A stretch of DNA of 64,000 nucleotides from Saccostrea cucullata (taxonomy: Eukaryota). Each line of letters opens with the position of its first letter. Within the stretch, counting starts at the first letter, position 1. The position numbers and the translations under genes are program-made. This document shows positions 12,572 to 50,586 of the stretch, piece after piece. The notes beneath the pieces were generated by a model that saw only the letters and a program-made list of their open reading frames with translations, had not been told where the DNA came from and searched no databases. The stretch is taken from the NCBI RefSeq assembly GCF_032062105.1, contig NW_026932596.1, positions 1 through 64,000 on the forward strand. The letters run 5' to 3'.

Positions 12572-15500
12572 TCACTGGTCAAACTCACTGAGACTCAAAA
12601 TTGCGTTTTCTTTTTTCATCTTAACCCATTCATCAGAGACTTCTGGAAGAATTAACTTGTGGTGCCCAGCTAGGGTTTTTCCATATTTTCCGATGAACCA
12701 AGACCAATATTTTGATATCTCTGTGGAAGGAGTTATTTCCCAACCTGGCATATATGTCTTGTAGCTCTTGTATGGGTGAAATACTCCCGGATCTTTTTTA
12801 GAACAGGTACACCAGTTGCTACATTGTGTTTTCCTTTCACTGTTTATGAGAAAATTGCAAGTTTCTAATACAAGCTCTCTGTTATATATCCAATGATAAC
12901 CATTGACCCCTTGTGGACGATGTTGTATACAGCTATGGTCATGATTGTCGTCCCTGGACGCAGTTGAGCAGGGTTCCTTGCACCAAGGACATGTTTGTGG
13001 ACAGCCCCACAACTTATCAATTATGACCTGATATGGAGACGGATCTTTCCAAGATACTGATTTGATATCTCTTTTTTCATAATCTGTAGTCAGCTCGCGT
13101 TTAACTTCGTCAATTTGCTCTTTGATTAATGACGATAAATCATCAAAGTTGCTTATGCCTAGATCTTTGATAGATTGAAAGGGTTCTGCCGAAAAATGAA
13201 AACTTTGATCTTTTACATTGACGAGAAATTTCTTTATCCATTCTGCAACCGACGTCGGTGGCTGGGGTTCACAGGACGCCATACGAACAGATATTTTTAT
13301 ATCACTCATTATTTTTTCCAACACTTCAATCGCATAGCGTTTGAAAGGTGTAATTCCATTTTCAACCTGTTTACTAAAGTGATTCTTTGTAAATTCAGAA
13401 ATCCAGTTTCTTGCATACGATTCACAGCAGGTAACGTACTGCATAAACTTGTCAAAATCATCATCTTCTGCTAAATCTTTTAAGATAGCCTTGATCAAAG
13501 GATATTTTCTGAACTCAAAAAGATGATTTATTTCCCTTGAAATGTGAAGGGATAGTTCCCACTCAATTTTTTCGTGTACTAAGGGCTTCATCTCCAAACA
13601 GAAAACATTGGACACTATAACTTCATTTGCTTTTGCAGTGCAGATACCAATAAAAAGAGCCTCTGTTTCCTGCCGGCTACTCTCTATTCTTGAGTGGATA
13701 CTGTTCTTTAACTTAAAGGCTCGAATCATCTTAGTAAAGTGATATACTGAAAATCTCGCAACATGGAGAACGACTGTAATTTCTAGTTTGTGCGTAATTG
13801 TATATCCATGATTTGCAGAATCCCTAAAATGATCCTGAAATGCATCAATGCAATACTTAAGGATCTGGCTGAAAATTGTAGTGTCGTATTCGTTATCAAC
13901 CGGTAGACTTTTGATGTATGTATCAATTTTTGAGAATATAAAATAACTGATATAGTGATAGGCTTTTGCTTTGTAGTCTTCAAGCGAAAAAGCATTTTTG
14001 ATCTTTGCCCAAGCGCTGGGAATTGTTATATGGTTTGATTTGATATCATTTATCGCCATTGTTCTTGCAAGTGTATTTGATCCCCGCCAGTTTTGAATAT
14101 TCTGAGCTTTTAAGCCATCTTCTACAAGTTGGTCATATTTTCTAAATCTATCGTAGAGCAGACTGACAATATGACTTCTCATCTCCTGTACATCAAGGTC
14201 AACATCTCTCTCTGGATTATCCCGAACAATATCATCAACCCATTGTTTCCAAGCTTGATCAAACTGTTTGGATATTTCTTCCTCTGAAGGCGTTTCCTTT
14301 CTTCCCTTCAAAGTTTTTGCAAAATCTGTAGCCTTTCCTTGAATTTCTTTCTTATTTTTTAGTATGCAATTATTACTGTCCATTAAGGTTTTGCATTTTT
14401 CTTTTTCGATATTTAATTTGTGTTTTATGTCACTTATTATTGCACGGGAAGTTGATTCAAGTTCAGCATTTTTTCGACCTTTCCAATGCACCATATGCTC
14501 AGCTAAATCTGATTCTTTAAAAAAAAGTTCCAATTCCTCTGTAATCGCTTTTGTTTTGGAACTAATGGTTCTTGAAAACTCTTCATATATTTCTCTTTCA
14601 TATCTATCGAGTTCATCATATTTTATACATTTTCTAAGCTTTGGTCGAACACTGTCATTCAACCATTTTAATTTCAGCTCATCAAGTTGCCAGGTAAGTT
14701 CTTGGAATTTTTTTTCTAATAAGCTGTATGCTTTAACTTCTAATACATTTCGGAAGCTGAATACAAAGTTTTCGGACAATATGCCATTCCAAAGGCTTTG
14801 CAAATGGTCTTTTGTGTTTTCGACAGAAAGGTAATTGTGAGATTCATCACTTGTCAAATCTATAAGAATGCATTTTGCTACTTCGATAACACTTGTGCTG
14901 TATTGTGAACTAGCTGGTGCCATCGGTGGACTACCATGCCATAAATCAGGAATATATTTGACATGCCTGATTGGGTCGAAGCCGATTACATCTTGAAATG
15001 ATCTTATATTTGCCACATGTTCCTCAGTAGCTACTTCTACTGTCATTTTATCCAAATTATTGACAATTTTTTGGTTCCCTTGGATTGTTAATTTGTCTGC
15101 ATCCTGTGCTGAAACATTCTGATGAACAAAGATACAAGACTGTTTTAAAGTTATTTTTTCATTTGCTTGTTTCAACCTAATCAACGCATGAACAACTATT
15201 TGGAGAACGTCTTCCATGTCTGCAATGGTTTCTCCTTTTATGTTAATAATGGAAACATCTCCCATGCCAATTACTAGAGTTGCAAGTTCATTATCATGAT
15301 TAACCTTTTCTCCAGCCAGCTCAGGTGCACGTAAACCTTCCGTGTCAATAATCATTGCGTAGTCAAACTTTAGGGAGGATTTTGTTTTGTCAATTGGTAC
15401 GAGTTGTATATAAATTCCCCTTGTGCACCTTCCAGCACTTACGGCAAATTGAAGTCCAAACATTGTATTGAGAAGGGTCGACTTTCCAGAACTTTGGATA

Positions 15501-18500
15501 CCTAAAACTGAAATAGCAAAGAGACGTTTATTTCTTCCAATTATCCTTGAAACTTCAGTATAAACAGCATTGATCCATTTCAATGGAACATTTGCGGCAT
15601 CACCATCCATGACTTCAAGTGGTTGTCCCCAAACTAACAGTTTGGCGGCAATCTTAGGTAAAGATTGTAGAATCTCCCGACTTTTCATGGTGATTGTACA
15701 ACTCGCATCATCTTGACAGTACATAAAAGCTTCATAAATTTGGCCCATTTCCCTAAAAAAATGTTCTAATCCGAAAGAAGAATGTGCCAAGTTTCTCTCT
15801 TCTTCAGAAATTTTTGACTTGAGTTCTATCATTTTTATCTCTTTATTCGATTCTTTTTCTGAGCTTTTGTGTGATCTGATTGATTCAAATTCGTAAAAAG
15901 CTCTTCTCAATCTGTTCAAAACTTTAGGCAAAATAATTCTGGAACGACTATCCATATATTGACGCAACCATGATAAGAAAAACAATGTTGTTTCCTTATC
16001 ACAGATACACGTTACTAAAATATCGACAAACTGGGCCATTATGTCATTTATTTGATTGAAAACGCACACTTGTTTCACTCTTAATATTCGCATCCTCTCT
16101 AAGTGTGGGTCGTTAGCATTAAACTTTTCCCTTTTTCCTGACCGACGCCCTTCTTTTTGCTCGTTACTCCATTCATGCCATAAAGCTTCACCCTGAAGTG
16201 GTAGAATATCATGTTTCTGTAGTCTTGTATTCTGTTGTGTACCTTCTATTTGAGATACAATTTGGTCACACAGCTGTTTTCCTAAAAGGGATTTTGGTAG
16301 TTCCTCATCACTATAGAAGCCTGATGGTAATTGTTCACTCATTTCTTCAAGGGACATTGAAAAGGTACTATGTTGAAGTGCATCATATACATCGTTGATT
16401 AGAAACTGTTTTACCTCTATTTCATTTAGATATCGTCCCTCTGAGGTAATTGAAAGAATAGAGCATTTTTCGAAGGTAAGCTCCGTGTTTTCTTCGTATA
16501 TTTGAATAAAATGTTCCGTCTCATCCTCGTCATGTGGCAAATCTGTTACAATTATGACATGAGCCTCTGATGCATGAATTTTCTTTAGGATTGGATAGTA
16601 CGTTTCCTTTTTTATATCTTCATAGTCAATAATAACTACCAACGCACTAGCCAAATTTAGCAAAAATTGTAGTTGTTTTGGGTAGGTGAATGCATTTCCT
16701 CTAAGATTTAGTACTGTCAGAGGCCATTCAATAGTTTTTTCTTTTTCCGATTTACTTCCGGTGTCATCGGTGCTCGTTTTTGACTTTGGAATATACCAAC
16801 TTGCCTCGATTGTTCCGCTAGCAAAAACTCTTCTATGGAATCCAAGTAAACAGTCCTTGTGAAAAAAAGTACTGTGTTCATCATTTTGGCTTCTCAAAAA
16901 CTGGTTGATCAGTTTTGATTTTGAACCTTTTCTGTTATCACCAATTCCTATAAAGGCAACTGTTCTCAATTGTTTTGTAGCCACAGACTCTGAACCTCCG
17001 TCAATAAAAATTTCCCTAATAGGCCATAAAGAAAGTCTAAGAAGCTCTCGTTCATAATCCTGATATACTAAGGGAATGGCAACTTGACAAACCTGCATTT
17101 TCTGTACTACAAGTCTTTTAAGAAATGAATCAAAGCACTGAAATATTGCAAGAAAAATATCTGCTGGGTGATACTGTTCTCTTGTTTGTTTTTTTGGTTT
17201 TCTTGATGATACGAGTTTTCGAACAGGAGGTTCTTCCTTCTCTGGCTGCGATTGGGATTCAAGCTTTCGAAGCAAATCATGCAGAGTTTTTTCCCTGAAA
17301 TCAAAATTAATTGCAATAATTTTTCTGAGCATTACCCAAGGTAGCTCTGAGAACGAGTCTGGTTCTGAAAATTGATTTTCATGCATTTTCAATACTTCTT
17401 GTAGAGTCAGCTTCCCTGGGTAAAATTCAGTCATATCCATTTGGGTTAAAATCTGCCATAATGGTTTATGCTTCTCTGAAGAAGAGTGTTCCGGTATAAA
17501 ATCTTCAATGAGGGCAGATCTATCAAACCCTTTGTCTCCTTCGAAATATGACAATGAAATCTCTGAAACCTGAACCATTTTTTTCAACATGCTATCTAAA
17601 CTAAGGGTGGTAGACTGAACTATATTTTGTACATTTGTCTCAAATTTAAGTCCTCTTTCATGCATGACTTTTATTATGCTGCTGAACAACTTTGCTTTCT
17701 CTTCTTGAGAAGTATTGGAACCAGCAATGGCACAATCTTTATTAATAAGGTGAAATATTATATTCTTTAAAGCCCATGCTTGAATAACAGATGCAGAACA
17801 GCATTTCATGGCCCCAAAGAACATAAGAGTTTTCTTACATCGCCGGGAATACTCTTTTATAACGTTTATTGTCAGCGTGTTTTTGATTTCTTTTGTACTT
17901 ATATTGTATCCTAAGGTCACTGCGTCTGAAAACATAGCTAGATACCGAAGACTCTTTCCATCTGACAGCAATTTGTCAAGTGCACAAGTAACAGATGTTT
18001 GTAAAGTCGTTGTTAAAAATTGAAAAAAGTTTTCATTTTGACATATTGATCCTTGTAAAATGCTCTTTACTGCAGGAAGAAATATTGTTTCCATCGTATA
18101 ACTCGCGCTTTCAACGTCTTGAAATGGACAAGGCAAAACAACAAAATCATTCAATAAATATTTTTGCAACCATTTCGATATTTCTCCGACTAAATCATGT
18201 CTAGTGTTGCCAAGCTTCTTTCTTAAGATTAGTAGCCCATGCCAGAGCTGATGTTTTTCTTCATTTGAAGATTTAGGTTTCATTTCCATGAACCTCCTTA
18301 AAAGGGTTTCAAAAATTTTGACACCTTCCAACAAAACATTCTGAATAGGTTTGTAACCAAATCTTGACTCCCCTTCACCTAGTTGATGCAAAAGAATCCG
18401 AAGAACCGCTTCTTCTGAATCGTTTCTTTTCGCTAACGTCTCCATCTTTTTCAAAAAGTTTTCTTTCCATTTCGCAATGGAATCACAGAAATTGCGCTCA

Positions 18501-19675
18501 TCATTTTGAGTAACAAGATTCATCCAAACGTCAGCAACAAAAATTGACAATTGTTCAGCATTTTTGAAATGTTCACTTTTTTGTTCGATCAAACTCCAAA
18601 CCCCCAAAACCTCTTCATTTTCACATCTTTTATTTACGACAATCAATGATCTTATACATTTTGACAATGTCTTGTGCCAAAGAGGAAAATTAACCACCGG
18701 GAATGCGCCTCCTAATTGATAACTGTTGGTAGATATGAGCTCGAATTCCTTACACTCATTTCTGCTCAATGTACATGCACTTTCTGAACTTTCAAGCTTG
18801 CAAAGATGCCTAGTCAAAAGCACATGCTCTATAAATTTCCTTCTAATTTCTGCTGAATTACATGTATTTCTTTCTTTGAATAAAATTTCTATCTCAAAAA
18901 TGCCACCCAAATGAATCGTTTGTAGCTGAAAATGTGAGCCAAATGACTGTAAAAAAATTGAACAAATTTTTTCTGCTCTTGATTTGTCAGATGCAGCGAC
19001 CTTTTCTATCTTTTGCAAACATTTGACTGCTTTTCCTGTTAAACATATTTCTGAACTTTTTGGTTTCCATTGATATACAGGACAAAAAATAAAGACAGTA
19101 GCTCTTTTGATGTTCTGATCGCCAGATTCAATTTGAAAAAGATCTTTTTGAGATGTTTTTACAGAATATCTTCTTTCATTCATTTTTGGGATAATATCTC
19201 CTTCAACTTCCAATTGTTCTTTCAAAGTAGCGAATTCAAACAATTTCGTGTATGGTTTACTTTCACTAGATTTTATGTCAACTTTAGAAATTACATCTAC
19301 CAGTTGCTTTCGTGTCTGTAAAACATCCCTTTTTCTTCCGGTGATCAATGCACCACACAGTGCAGGTACGAAACAACAGTGATTTAAAACGTCTTTATAA
19401 GAAAAACTGAATTCCTGTAAATGTTTCAAGCAAACACCAGCATCATTCAAAAGATCTTTACTTAAATTTGAATGTACTTGAAAAGTTTCTTCAAAAGGCG
19501 TCAAGATTTCTTGAAGACCAAGACTTTTTTGCAAACTGTTGGGAATCTTTATTCTCCAGTCTGTTTCTTCACATGGTTGAAGAATTTTCCGTAGCTCTTC
19601 AATATGGTGTTTTATATCCTTAAACCAGACAAAATATTTTATTTTAATCAGAAAGTAAAAAAATACGTGCATCAT
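12572..19675 (-). CDS. GVIN1: Interferon-induced very large GTPase 1-like (VLIG/GVIN/URGCP family), main coding exon; the true exon probably starts at 19618
   Basis: Uninterrupted 2367-aa ORF. VLIG G domain: G1 GIQSSGKS (nt 15502-15479), G2 in AGRCTRG, G3 DTEG (15346-15335), then FVHQNV and LWHGSPPMAP. Upstream URGCP-like degenerate P-loop (VAFIGIGDNRKGSKSKLINQFL, HSTFFHKD, GTIEASWY, LNLRGNA). C-terminal GCPQTCPWCKEPC..H...HRPQG. The first 19 codons look intronic, with an AG acceptor at 19620-19619. Confidence 0.93.
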   Translation of the reverse strand: MMHVFFYFLIKIKYFVWFKDIKHHIEELRKILQPCEETDWRIKIPNSLQKSLGLQEILTPFEETFQVHSNLSKDLLNDAGVCLKHLQEFSFSYKDVLNHCCFVPALCGALITGRKRDVLQTRKQLVDVISKVDIKSSESKPYTKLFEFATLKEQLEVEGDIIPKMNERRYSVKTSQKDLFQIESGDQNIKRATVFIFCPVYQWKPKSSEICLTGKAVKCLQKIEKVAASDKSRAEKICSIFLQSFGSHFQLQTIHLGGIFEIEILFKERNTCNSAEIRRKFIEHVLLTRHLCKLESSESACTLSRNECKEFELISTNSYQLGGAFPVVNFPLWHKTLSKCIRSLIVVNKRCENEEVLGVWSLIEQKSEHFKNAEQLSIFVADVWMNLVTQNDERNFCDSIAKWKENFLKKMETLAKRNDSEEAVLRILLHQLGEGESRFGYKPIQNVLLEGVKIFETLLRRFMEMKPKSSNEEKHQLWHGLLILRKKLGNTRHDLVGEISKWLQKYLLNDFVVLPCPFQDVESASYTMETIFLPAVKSILQGSICQNENFFQFLTTTLQTSVTCALDKLLSDGKSLRYLAMFSDAVTLGYNISTKEIKNTLTINVIKEYSRRCKKTLMFFGAMKCCSASVIQAWALKNIIFHLINKDCAIAGSNTSQEEKAKLFSSIIKVMHERGLKFETNVQNIVQSTTLSLDSMLKKMVQVSEISLSYFEGDKGFDRSALIEDFIPEHSSSEKHKPLWQILTQMDMTEFYPGKLTLQEVLKMHENQFSEPDSFSELPWVMLRKIIAINFDFREKTLHDLLRKLESQSQPEKEEPPVRKLVSSRKPKKQTREQYHPADIFLAIFQCFDSFLKRLVVQKMQVCQVAIPLVYQDYERELLRLSLWPIREIFIDGGSESVATKQLRTVAFIGIGDNRKGSKSKLINQFLRSQNDEHSTFFHKDCLLGFHRRVFASGTIEASWYIPKSKTSTDDTGSKSEKEKTIEWPLTVLNLRGNAFTYPKQLQFLLNLASALVVIIDYEDIKKETYYPILKKIHASEAHVIIVTDLPHDEDETEHFIQIYEENTELTFEKCSILSITSEGRYLNEIEVKQFLINDVYDALQHSTFSMSLEEMSEQLPSGFYSDEELPKSLLGKQLCDQIVSQIEGTQQNTRLQKHDILPLQGEALWHEWSNEQKEGRRSGKREKFNANDPHLERMRILRVKQVCVFNQINDIMAQFVDILVTCICDKETTLFFLSWLRQYMDSRSRIILPKVLNRLRRAFYEFESIRSHKSSEKESNKEIKMIELKSKISEEERNLAHSSFGLEHFFREMGQIYEAFMYCQDDASCTITMKSREILQSLPKIAAKLLVWGQPLEVMDGDAANVPLKWINAVYTEVSRIIGRNKRLFAISVLGIQSSGKSTLLNTMFGLQFAVSAGRCTRGIYIQLVPIDKTKSSLKFDYAMIIDTEGLRAPELAGEKVNHDNELATLVIGMGDVSIINIKGETIADMEDVLQIVVHALIRLKQANEKITLKQSCIFVHQNVSAQDADKLTIQGNQKIVNNLDKMTVEVATEEHVANIRSFQDVIGFDPIRHVKYIPDLWHGSPPMAPASSQYSTSVIEVAKCILIDLTSDESHNYLSVENTKDHLQSLWNGILSENFVFSFRNVLEVKAYSLLEKKFQELTWQLDELKLKWLNDSVRPKLRKCIKYDELDRYEREIYEEFSRTISSKTKAITEELELFFKESDLAEHMVHWKGRKNAELESTSRAIISDIKHKLNIEKEKCKTLMDSNNCILKNKKEIQGKATDFAKTLKGRKETPSEEEISKQFDQAWKQWVDDIVRDNPERDVDLDVQEMRSHIVSLLYDRFRKYDQLVEDGLKAQNIQNWRGSNTLARTMAINDIKSNHITIPSAWAKIKNAFSLEDYKAKAYHYISYFIFSKIDTYIKSLPVDNEYDTTIFSQILKYCIDAFQDHFRDSANHGYTITHKLEITVVLHVARFSVYHFTKMIRAFKLKNSIHSRIESSRQETEALFIGICTAKANEVIVSNVFCLEMKPLVHEKIEWELSLHISREINHLFEFRKYPLIKAILKDLAEDDDFDKFMQYVTCCESYARNWISEFTKNHFSKQVENGITPFKRYAIEVLEKIMSDIKISVRMASCEPQPPTSVAEWIKKFLVNVKDQSFHFSAEPFQSIKDLGISNFDDLSSLIKEQIDEVKRELTTDYEKRDIKSVSWKDPSPYQVIIDKLWGCPQTCPWCKEPCSTASRDDNHDHSCIQHRPQGVNGYHWIYNRELVLETCNFLINSERKTQCSNWCTCSKKDPGVFHPYKSYKTYMPGWEITPSTEISKYWSWFIGKYGKTLAGHHKLILPEVSDEWVKMKKENAILSLSEFDQ

Positions 19676-19834
19676 AGTTATCGTTTACAGTTACTCTATA
19701 TTTTTTTTAAAATTTATTTTAGAAAATATGCGTTCATGTATGTGTGTACATGTAAGAGGGTGTGTGAGGGAGGATGTGTTTGTGTCCGAGGGGTGATAAA
19801 AAAATATGTGTTGCCTAACATGTACCCATATAAC

Positions 19835-20405
19835 CACGATTACGATAGGAAAAATGGGAATTTTCAAAGAATTAATGTATTTTCACTATATAATCAATAT
19901 AGCCCCACCCTTACACCTGAACCCCTGACCCTGCAGCCATAAAACTCGCAATTTTCAAAGAAGCATTTTTGCTCATCATAGCTATATAATTGGATAAAAC
20001 AAAAGCATGACTTTTAAAAAAAATAATGCATTTTCACTATATAATCAATAGAGCTCCACCCTAACACTACATGTAGAACCCCTGACCCTGGGGCCATGAA
20101 TTTCACAATTTTGGTAGAGGACTCATTGCTGATTACATTCATGCAAACAGTTTGACTGCTTGATGTCCAGGAGTAAAAAAGAAGATTTTTTAAAGATTGC
20201 ACTAACCCTCAGGCTCCAGGGGGGCGGGGATTATGAAATTCACAATTTTTGTTCATCTTCATCCATAGATGATTTATCTATAACTTGGTGAAAATTGGTT
20301 GAGGGGTTGCAGAGAAGAAGCTGAAAATTTTCTTATGTTAACGCACGACGACGGACGAAAACGGATAATAATATGTCACCTAAATTTACTCAGGTGATCT
20401 AAAAA
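19835..20405 (-). mobile_element. Helitron/Helentron-type non-autonomous element carrying Cg170-like satellite monomers
   Basis: About 2.5 diverged ~165-bp monomers (TTTTCACTATATAATCAAT...ACCCCTGACCCTG...CACAATTTT), a GACG microsatellite and a terminal hairpin TCACCTAAAT..CTCAGGTGA followed by AAAAA. Confidence 0.65.
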
Positions 20406-21132
20406 TACATATAAAATCTAATTTTTCTCAATAAACAAAATAGTAAATACATGTACGTATGTATGGTATATTATATTGTTTTATCATTGACTTGCAGAAC
20501 AAGTAGGTCGACTATTTATCAGATCATTGATGAGGGAGAATATTGTATTTGATTATAAATCGATTTTGAATGGGGGGAGGGGGGGGCAGCCACATATATT
20601 ATTTTCACTTACCTGAACAAGTTGACAAGCAATAAAAAAGGAAAAGTTGTCCAAAGACAAAAATTCTATTTCGTGGGGGGAGACGAAATTCCTATTTCGG
20701 GGGTGGGAGGTGGTGTGAAGGCCAACAAAAAGAGGGGGGGGGGAGAACTAGCCTTTCAGTGGGCTTTCCTATAGTTTAAGTAAGGTTGGTGAAAAAAGTG
20801 GGGGGAGGCCCCCTGCTTGATAATGCCTGTTTATAAAGGGGTACATCTGAGCAGTGAGACATGGCTGCTGAATAGAACAGTAGCATTATAAGGTTTAGTC
20901 TTCGGCCATAACGATATGGTCAGAGACGAAAATATAAACCATAACGCATTCTGCATCTAATTTAGACTAATCTACGTTTTGATATAAGATAAAATAAATG
21001 CCGCATTTATTTAAATTCATTTTACCAACTGTATTGTATACATAATTTTTAATTAATTCAAGACATCAAAGCCTTAGATGAAGATGAGTAATTAAATACT
21101 TAATTTCTATGTATTTTCTCTATCCGAAAAAA

Positions 21133-48789: not shown

Positions 48790-50586
48790 AATGACCACAG
48801 GGGAAAAGTTTGTTCGAAATCTATCAAGATACAACTTATCCGAACATGAACTTTTTTTTACTGAGCAGAGGCTTGAAATTCATTCAAACGCTTAAAAGCA
48901 ACTATGCTAAAAGCATACTTCTCAATGATATTGAAGAATTTGCTAGAAAACTCAGATGCAAATTCCACTTTGATACCGGAGACAACACTACAATTCACCC
49001 CTTTAAACCAAATCTGGCTACAAACCGCCATTTACATGCAGGGAACTCGAGAAATATATAGATAAAACAAAACTGGAAATTTCCTCAATGGAAATTATAA
49101 AAAAGAAATCGAACATCTCAGAGTCTGAAAAAGCAGCTATTTTATCTCTTAAAAATAACAACGACATTGTTATCAATAAAGCAGATAAAAGCAACACAAG
49201 GCCAACTGCAATCTAAAACTATATGCAAGAATCTGAACCCAACATGCTTAAACTGCATGACAGTATTCATAATAAACTTGCCGAAATGCATACTAATGGA
49301 TCACTGGCCAAAGACACATAAGTTCTTCAATGACAAAAAAAACCTTCACTCAAATGTGGGCACTTACACCTTTTTACCTAAAACCCACAAAATACCAGCA
49401 AACATTTTCAATGCTCTAATTAATGCTCTAATAAACGGTCAGTGCAGCTTTAGGAAATTACCACCTGGTAGACCTGGTAGACCAATTATCTCGCAATGCG
49501 ATACGCCAACGAGGAAAATAAGACAATATTTCGATTACTTTCCTGTACCCATTGTACAAAAACAATCATTTTATACTGAAGGCACCACGGACTTTATCAC
49601 CAAAATCGAAAGCCTTACACTGCCAACCAACGCATTATTAATTACTTATGATGTGACGAGCATGTACACAAACATGGAATTTAACGAACTTCTTTCTTCA
49701 GTGAATGAGGCTTACACACAGGCCAAAAAAACGCAATTAGACATTCCATATCCTAGCCCCGAGGATTCAAACTTTTTCCTGAAATGCGTCTTGGAAAACA
49801 ATTACTTTGAGTTTGATGGAAAATACTACAAACAAATGGGGGCAGTCCCCAGTCCAGAGATTTGTGACATCAGAATGTATCAAATCACACAGCATATATT
49901 GGCACAATTTCGTCATTCTCGCAAAATTGTCTTCCACGGTAGATACCGTGATGACGGTTTCATAATATTCAATGGAACGCAACCAGAGATAGAAGAATTT
50001 TTCAATATCGGCAATCACTGTCACAAGCATCTAAGTTTAACATTTGAAATGTTTCCATCTTCCGTTAACTTCCTTGATACTACAGTTTACAAGGGACCGA
50101 AATTTCAAAATCTTAACAAACTTGATATCAAATCGTTTATCAAACCAACAAATAACTTTGAGTATTTACACAGAAAGAGCGATCATAGCCCAGCTGTGTT
50201 TAAAGGATTCATTAAAGGAGAATGCATTGGAAATGCAAGAAATACTACAGACCATGAAATATTACATGCAACACTCAATGACTTCAAGGCTCACTTATCA
50301 AAGCGAGGCTATCTACTTCGGAAATTGATCCTACTGTCGAAGAAACGATCAACACAAACCGATCAAACACAATACAGAACAGCCATTACGTAACCCTATA
50401 GTACTGGTTACTAAATTTAACCCTTGCATTAAAGGATTGAAAAAACGAATTCTATAATATTGGAACACCATTCTTAGAAATCCAGAATGCAAAACTTTAT
50501 GTAACTCTCAACCAATCATTGCTTACAGCAAACACAAGAATAGAGGTGACGAGATAATCCGATCTCACCTAGAACAAACACCATGA
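48790..50586 (+). pseudogene. PLE reverse transcriptase, frameshifted
   Basis: ORFs 48810-49061 and 49167-50393 plus a frameshifted tail. RT motifs present, motif B partly deleted. Confidence 0.85.

Follow-up and report, generated by a model that had tools for sequence, protein, structure and literature searches.

Results

The window analysed here is the whole 64,000-nucleotide stretch at positions 1 to 64,000 of contig NW_026932596.1 of the oyster Saccostrea cucullata (assembly GCF_032062105.1). On its minus strand, to which all coordinates of the gene described below refer, a single unbroken open reading frame (ORF) of 2,367 codons, stop included, occupies nt 12572-19675 and translates as a 2,367-aa giant GTPase. 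The gene has a G+C content of ~33-36% and is set in DNA of 27-39% G+C. The domains encoded in this one frame are, in order, a MACPF domain, a helical region, a URGCP domain, a URGCP/GVIN GTPase domain and a C-terminal region. The best explanation of this organization is one giant coding exon for a GVIN/VLIG-type very large GTPase with an N-terminal MACPF domain. The original prediction, drawn from the sequence of this stretch, was that a perforin-like domain is joined to a large GTPase; the two are indeed found in frame with each other, the latter being of the GVIN/URGCP type.

The URGCP-like domain (aa 836-1137, nt 16265-17170; Pfam PF25496, 4.2e-50) lies 5' of the URGCP/GVIN-type GTPase domain (aa 1190-1593, nt 14897-16108; Pfam PF25683, 1.1e-116), in which both the G1 P-loop, GIQSSGKS (aa 1392-1399, nt 15479-15502), and the G3 motif, DTEG (aa 1444-1447), are intact. 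No canonical [NT]KxD G4 motif was found in this GTPase, the presence of a G4 in the family not having been checked. Further downstream, a Cys/His-rich segment of the form CPxxCPWC...HxHxC... (aa 2225-2297, nt 12785-13003), which reads further as CPxxCPWC...HDHSC...C..C.C, looks like a metal-binding module and probably falls within the region that newer Pfam releases name GVIN1_C.

At the 5' end of the ORF, a pyrimidine-rich tract ending in ...tttaag ahead of GAT forms a candidate 3' splice acceptor (nt 19619-19620), such that the coding exon probably starts at nt 19618, i.e., at codon 20 and in phase 0. The first 19 codons of the ORF read as a translated polypyrimidine tract, and similarity to the paralogs starts at ~19629. 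The only database gene model at the locus, P0001, is 1,957 aa long and begins at Met411 (nt 18443-18445), although the frame is open from 19675; it thus covers only aa 411-2367 and omits the whole MACPF domain. This start is an annotation error, and the model was probably truncated because of the missing start codon. A tblastn search with the N-termini of relatives, including two from the same genome (L017 and L018, see below), did not find the GVIN1_N region (PF26771) in the window outside the ORF; it could be encoded on an exon beyond the window.

The affinity of the N-terminal region is not apparent from single sequences. With the N-terminus of the window protein, phmmer returned no match in the PDB and a word-indexed protein search returned only its own truncated gene model; its homology became visible only with profiles built from paralogs in the same genome, whose N-terminal regions share 65%, 52% and ~20% identity with it. 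A profile of six such own-genome paralog sequences (A1) gave five PDB matches at E<10, all of them to MACPF domains (C8-alpha and Toxoplasma PLP1). Extending it with 40 short relatives to 46 sequences (A2) recovered pleurotolysin B (2.4e-5) and C8-alpha (4.9e-5), along with C8-beta, C9, TgPLP1 and the Photorhabdus Plu-MACPF. The same profile also matched engineered gp41 helical constructs (~4e-6) via columns of the N-terminal flank (SGG..L.GI in a coiled coil) outside the domain, and these matches were rejected as what we judge to be a composition or coiled-coil artefact. Taken individually, 21 of the 46 aligned relatives match the Pfam MACPF family (PF01823), the best with 4.7e-10. Two full-length relatives combine such a match with URGCP_GTPase: P0003, an intact same-genome paralog (MACPF 3.7e-8, 34.2 bits vs a cut-off of 21.5) that is 100% identical to the own-genome contig C9432 over 901 residues and bears the NCBI name 'interferon-induced very large GTPase 1-like', and P0012, a full-length relative with MACPF at 25.2 bits, above the gathering cut-off. 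Independently, in a feature search of the ESM Atlas with the window domain, 20 of 30 neighbours were MACPF (score 0.95), with clusters of the cholesterol-dependent cytolysins (CDCs) and of the SNTX type scoring lower.

Structure prediction converges on the same fold. The AlphaFold2 model, computed from the A2 alignment with the window domain as the first row and no templates, has a mean pLDDT of 83.5 and a pTM of 0.80. It is predicted to contain a bent four-stranded sheet, two flanking helical clusters and a helix-turn-helix in the MACPF order, namely a strand (aa 142-148), a helical cluster (149-188), a long strand (189-203), the helix-turn-helix (214-245), a long bent strand bearing a GG (248-268), a second helical cluster (269-310) and a fourth strand (311-321), followed by a GG...W...L block. 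In a Foldseek search against the PDB, the top 50 matches were all MACPF proteins, the best being MPEG-1 (2.9e-9), followed by C9, Plu-MACPF, C8, perforin, pleurotolysin B, PLP1 and GNIP1Aa. VIA-align superimposed the model on the C8-alpha MACPF domain (238 residues, rmsd 4.8) and on MPEG-1 with a Z of 13.5 in each case, aligning 238-255 residues, and gave lower scores for C6 (11.5), perforin (10.8), astrotactin-2 (9.2) and the CDCs (~6.5). Since the aligned range corresponds to model residues 37-339, we place the bounds of the domain at aa 88-390 (nt 18506-19414), which encloses the segment first proposed (18521-19393, i.e., aa 95-385). It is preceded by a helical lead-in (aa 52-87, nt 19415-19522), modelled as a helix at residues 11-36 in domain numbering, with the VIA alignments beginning at about model residue 37. 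A homodimer prediction of the MACPF domain scored 0.00, i.e., 'no answer', and counts neither for nor against any reading. Taken together, the profile searches, the model and the Pfam matches of the relatives leave little room for doubt that aa 88-390 are homologous to MACPF domains and share their fold, as had been proposed with structure prediction and Foldseek as the suggested check.

This placement gives a structural context to the motif that drew attention to the region. The signature-like motif FGSHFQLQTIHLGG is encoded at aa 245-258 (nt 18902-18943), exactly where it had been reported and with IFEIEIL next to it; the downstream YQLGG...FPLWHKTL...LIVV...VLGVWSLI also reads as described. 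In the predicted structure, the motif sits where the helix-turn-helix (aa 214-245, nt 18941-19036; helices at 163-176 and 180-194 in domain numbering) ends and the third core strand starts (model residues 194-207, the strand being 197-217), with the GG in the bend. A second conserved block, GG...W...L, follows strand beta-4 (aa 322-337, nt 18665-18712), and its G271, G272, W282 and L286 are 92-99% conserved in 123 near-complete family domains. Across both blocks, the 46-sequence alignment shows little or no variation at the G, H, GG, second GG, W and L, and in the 123 domains these positions are 92-100% conserved; the motif is therefore not a chance occurrence. Conservation in orthologs had been named as a check, and the pattern [FY]G[ST]H-x8-GG occurs in 141 of the top 150 representatives of the family, 132 of the 141 sharing the spacing of the window. 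The textbook signature (Y/W)G(T/S)H(F/Y)x6GG invoked by the original prediction does not hold to the letter, as the window reads F-G-S-H-F-x7-G-G, but it does hold structurally, with the G, H and GG all kept.

The two membrane-inserting (TMH) regions of the window copy depart from what is usual in its family. TMH1/CH1 (aa 149-188, nt 19112-19231) is 40 aa long, 35% charged and has a longest uncharged run of 4 residues; TMH2/CH2 (aa 269-310, nt 18746-18871) is 42 aa long, 33% charged and has a longest uncharged run of 6. The corresponding family medians between the conserved strands are 56 and 52 aa, which is the canonical range for the TMH regions of MACPF proteins. In terms of charged fraction, the window copy stands at the 97th (TMH1) and 91st (TMH2) percentiles of the family, and in terms of the longest uncharged run, for which the family medians are 11 and 13 residues, at the 0th and 5th. 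Its best-hairpin alternation score stands at the 66th percentile for TMH1 and at the 8th for TMH2. The window copy thus falls short of the MACPF expectation of two regions of ~50-60 residues with polar/apolar alternation.

The wider family presents another picture, as most members retain TMH regions of the canonical length (56 and 52 aa). The mean hydrophobicity of the 65 members whose TMH1 is 56 residues long traces an amphipathic helix and then two alternating stretches, of 11 and 8 residues in that order, separated by a G-rich turn of four residues; the strand-turn-strand core of this profile is almost free of charge, and TMH2 is similar. This is suggestive of amphipathic hairpins in the family at large, with a bird protein providing a clear example of the uncharged alternating pattern. 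The residues absent from the window copy (~16 and ~10) coincide with this uncharged strand-turn-strand core. Its close paralogs share these losses, and their TMH regions of 40 and 42 aa are likewise about one-third charged. In a tree of the domain core, the window copy, two close paralogs and the distant relative P0133 are nested in a group with 56/56-residue TMH regions; the truncation is therefore derived. As about one-fifth of the family members have one or both TMH regions of at most 46 residues, such trimming has probably happened more than once. The caveat attached to the original prediction, that the hairpins look short and non-amphipathic, is therefore true of the window copy, where it describes the derived state of a sub-clade and not a trait of the family (medians 56/52). 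With its TMH regions shortened and ~34% charged, the window copy is probably non-lytic.

A HMMER scan with the A1 profile against 1.84 billion representatives recovered 454 relatives at E<=1e-3, 323 of them at E<=1e-10, many being ~2,400 aa in length. The named members come from oyster, the sea urchin Lytechinus pictus, tarpon, sturgeon, the frog Pyxicephalus and many birds, and the name given is in every case either interferon-induced very large GTPase 1(-like) or VLIG-type G domain protein. Hence, the fusion of MACPF to GVIN is ancient and family-wide, spanning mollusc, echinoderm, fish, frog and birds. We also modelled the domain of a bird GVIN1 (locus L037) from an alignment of its own (A3): the AlphaFold2 model (pLDDT 83.6) matches murine perforin-2 with a Z of 14.6 over 260 residues, and its ESM Atlas neighbours are MACPF (0.96). 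The earlier statement that vertebrate GVIN1 has a similar motif holds for sturgeon, tarpon, frog and many bird proteins.

The further surmise of a family-wide but under-annotated domain also stands, given the 454 relatives and the failure of Pfam to see most of the bird copies and that of the sturgeon. Pfam MACPF is not matched in the sturgeon and bird proteins that we scanned, and precomputed PF01823 matches are present on only 4 of 120 bird GVIN1 clusters, among the matches listed. Newer Pfam families for GVIN comprise GVIN1_N, URGCP_N, GVIN1 and GVIN1_C. GVIN1_N (PF26771) appears to be confined to the first ~160 residues in vertebrate GVIN1; residues ~160-505, i.e., the MACPF domain, are thus without a family in most entries (L037 and P0101/P0256 being cases in point). 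We considered PF26771 as the Pfam family of the MACPF region and rejected it, as it is absent from a bird protein whose sequence begins only at residue 160 yet includes the MACPF region.

The MACPF head is, on the sequence comparisons, the fastest-evolving part of the protein while still being under constraint. Ratios of nonsynonymous to synonymous substitution rates (dN/dS) between the window copy and its paralogs on contigs C14720 and C21372 (the stop between the two ORFs of C21372 was omitted and nothing substituted) are 0.39-0.51 in the MACPF domain, as against 0.19-0.30 in the helical region and 0.13-0.17 in the GTPase.

Other copies in the same genome were seen alongside these paralogs. 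Two loci, on G000:C15262 (L003) and G000:C1992 (L005), share 87-89% DNA identity with window positions 17463-21098, which span the MACPF exon together with 1.4 kb of non-coding DNA upstream of it; the frame is broken in both, in the C15262 copy directly after the signature motif, and they are either recent duplicates or divergent haplotigs. Two further loci, L017 (G000:C15354:423644-424978) and L018 (G000:C6796:224463-225851), are ORFs of 561 and 514 aa encoding a GVIN1_N-like lead-in, GLD..(F/Y)W....D(I/V)GIT..KQLKH, followed by a full-hairpin MACPF domain. On C15354, there is no ORF of at least 200 aa within 9.6 kb downstream of L017. These may be stand-alone MACPF proteins of the GVIN-MACPF family or genes with small exons.

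Beyond the gene itself, a unit of ~100 bp occurs twice just upstream of it (19858-19955 and 20009-20112), with 79% identity to a copy in the paralog loci, and is recognizable as a recurring ...ggtcaggggttc...tattgattatatagtgaaaat... block. Toward the other end of the window lies a LINE-type retrotransposon on the plus strand (59170-61821 and 61818-62936), with an 883-aa ORF combining an endonuclease/exonuclease/phosphatase domain with a reverse transcriptase (RVT_1, 6.8e-36) and, after it, a 372-aa ORF with a zf-RVT. A 408-aa ORF at 49167-50393 (plus strand) has a weak RVT_1 match (2.9e-4) below the cut-off.

Discussion

Both parts of this protein are already known as kinds, and automated Pfam MACPF matches are present on some database entries, such as P0003. 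We could not find described in the searched literature a giant cytosolic GTPase headed by a MACPF domain, an architecture conserved across Bilateria, nor the contrast between paralogs with full and with trimmed hairpins. In full-text searches, no paper connected GVIN, VLIG or very large GTPases with MACPF; the two are only co-mentioned in transcriptome lists. The only functional study, a recent one, showed that human GVIN1 coats cytosolic Burkholderia, reportedly in parallel with GBP1, and that the coat disturbs the bacterial outer membrane; it describes a 1,808-aa ORF with only 'an N-terminal domain' and mentions no MACPF (bioRxiv 10.1101/2025.03.24.645074). Our observations also expose a gap in annotation, with Pfam missing the domain in the window copy, the sturgeon and most bird proteins, and the gene model at the locus omitting it altogether.

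Comparison with known systems helps define what is distinctive about this protein. Its closest counterparts are the vertebrate GVIN1/VLIG-1 proteins, which share its architecture, its size, the URGCP and URGCP_GTPase domains and, in sturgeon, tarpon, frog and birds, an N-terminal MACPF-type domain with [FY]GSH-x8-GG. They differ in that bird GVIN1 has an extra GVIN1_N region of ~160 aa ahead of the MACPF domain, which was not found in the window, and in having TMH regions of 56/52-55 aa with uncharged hairpins, as against the 40/42 aa of the highly charged versions in the window. Among MACPF proteins proper, MPEG1 (perforin-2), an ancient metazoan antibacterial protein, is the best or joint-best structural match of both the oyster and the bird domains over ~250-260 residues (Z of 13.5 and 14.6, respectively). 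However, MPEG1 is a lumenal, membrane-anchored protein with a signal peptide and a P2 domain, whereas the MACPF domain of the window fronts a nucleotide-dependent, presumably cytosolic GTPase and has shortened TMH regions.

Non-pore-forming MACPF proteins, viz., astrotactin-2 (Z 9.2) and those of the C6/C8-beta type (C6, Z 11.5), use the scaffold without forming a full beta-barrel alone; unlike the window protein, they are extracellular or lumenal and lack a GTPase. Stonustoxin-type MACPF_SNTX proteins have no classical signal peptide and are fused to intracellular-type domains. They are among the ESM Atlas neighbours and are matched by the bird model at a Z of 6.7, but are structurally far more distant than MPEG1, C8 or pleurotolysin B, and have no GTPase. 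In functional terms, the nearest analogue is the GBP1 coatomer, a GTP-driven polymer of the dynamin superfamily on the outer membranes of cytosolic Gram-negative bacteria. GBP1 binds via a farnesyl tail and contacts with lipopolysaccharide, and is not known to have a MACPF domain; on the side of the window protein, the Pfam GBP match falls below threshold.

MACPF proteins are classically extracellular or lumenal membrane-attack machines, as in complement, perforin and perforin-2. The window protein is by contrast likely to be cytosolic, given that its GTPase family is cytosolic and that human GVIN1 acts on cytosolic bacteria. Across the family, the MACPF head would then be the part of a GTP-driven coat that engages membranes or oligomerises. 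In the window copy, it most likely no longer makes a beta-barrel pore and would rather serve as a non-lytic module for target binding or self-assembly, akin to other non-pore-forming MACPF proteins. We thus favour, with a probability of roughly 70%, a cytosolic GVIN with a true MACPF head, in which the family head engages membranes or assembles and the head of this particular copy is non-lytic.

Several points weigh against this reading as a whole or in part. The fold assignment is a prediction rather than an experiment. The window copy itself has no Pfam MACPF match, even at E<=1, and its signature is off by one residue (x7 instead of x6, as throughout the family) and opens with F in place of Y/W. 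The amphipathicity of the family hairpins is only suggestive, because shuffling the columns of the family mean profile yielded 243/2000 for TMH1 and 64/2000 for TMH2 (464/2000 in a further test), and the hydrophobic-moment z-scores of individual sequences are weak (medians 0.4 and 0.7). The length of the TMH regions does not by itself exclude insertion, since hairpins of ~40 aa exceed those of the CDCs, which are only ~30 residues long. At the 5' end, the translated ORF lacks a Met from codon 20 up to the MACPF core; neither blastn with the upstream regions of the paralogs nor tblastn with the N-termini of relatives revealed an upstream exon, in searches of 12 kb and of the whole window that gave one weak match, on the wrong strand. 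No start codon was identified, and no RNA run is listed for nt 18400-19700. Finally, four related copies (C15262, C1992, C14720 and C21372) are broken by frameshifts or stops.

A reading that we consider unlikely goes further than ours in taking the GVIN/VLIG family as cytosolic GTP-gated MACPF pore-formers, wherein the GTP-driven assembly of the coat on cytosolic bacteria or pathogen vacuoles would position the heads, and the hairpins of members that have them at full length, i.e., most vertebrate and many invertebrate copies, would insert into the target membrane. The short-hairpin oyster clade would under it be a non-lytic offshoot with a role as regulator, decoy or sensor. If true, the GVINs would constitute an intracellular perforin system, hitherto unrecognised, that is conserved across Bilateria.

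Also unlikely is the alternative that the window copy is decaying or not expressed, as part of a fast-turnover family, with the MACPF domain as a relic and the trimmed hairpins as loss of function. The absence of a start codon past the predicted acceptor and of an upstream exon in the window, the absence of a listed RNA run, and a dN/dS in the MACPF domain about three times that of the GTPase are all in keeping with it, as are the broken frames of the near-copies on C15262 and C1992 and of the paralogs on C14720 and C21372; with several close paralogs disrupted, the short-TMH clade as a whole may be decaying. However, a stop-free frame of 7.1 kb at ~34% G+C is unexpected for a long-dead gene, and a dN/dS of 0.4-0.5 still signifies constraint. 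Further, the short-TMH state is common to three paralogs at 52-65% identity and has hence persisted, and short-TMH members also occur in other lineages (e.g., P0133).

We regard as quite improbable the converse possibility that the window copy itself works as a GTP-gated pore former in the cytosol, one whose short TMH regions would unfurl in the manner of the CDCs after GTPase-driven assembly. Its MACPF scaffold, hinge glycines and helix-turn-helix are intact, the dN/dS of its TMH segments is below 1, and both the modest length of CDC hairpins and the alternation score of TMH1 would be compatible with insertion. Set against these are the charge of the two regions (35% and 33%), their uncharged runs of merely 4 and 6 residues, the low hairpin score of TMH2, and the fact that the residues lost are those of the family's uncharged strand-turn-strand core. 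Lastly, that the motif is a chance resemblance in an N-terminal region of another fold is scarcely credible: it would account for the missing Pfam and single-sequence PDB matches and the one-residue deviation in spacing, but every independent line of evidence points to MACPF.

Returning to the favoured reading, a non-lytic oyster copy of a cytosolic GVIN with a true MACPF head, its wider import lies in what it offers for a poorly charted family. The GVINs are the least understood of the interferon-inducible GTPases, with their first reported function dating only from 2025. A MACPF head conserved from oysters to birds provides a testable mechanism for how GVIN coats could engage or damage membranes, and would add to the few examples of a MACPF domain that operates in the cytosol and is controlled by nucleotides. 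Moreover, the coexistence of paralogs with full and with trimmed hairpins in one genome constitutes a ready-made natural experiment.

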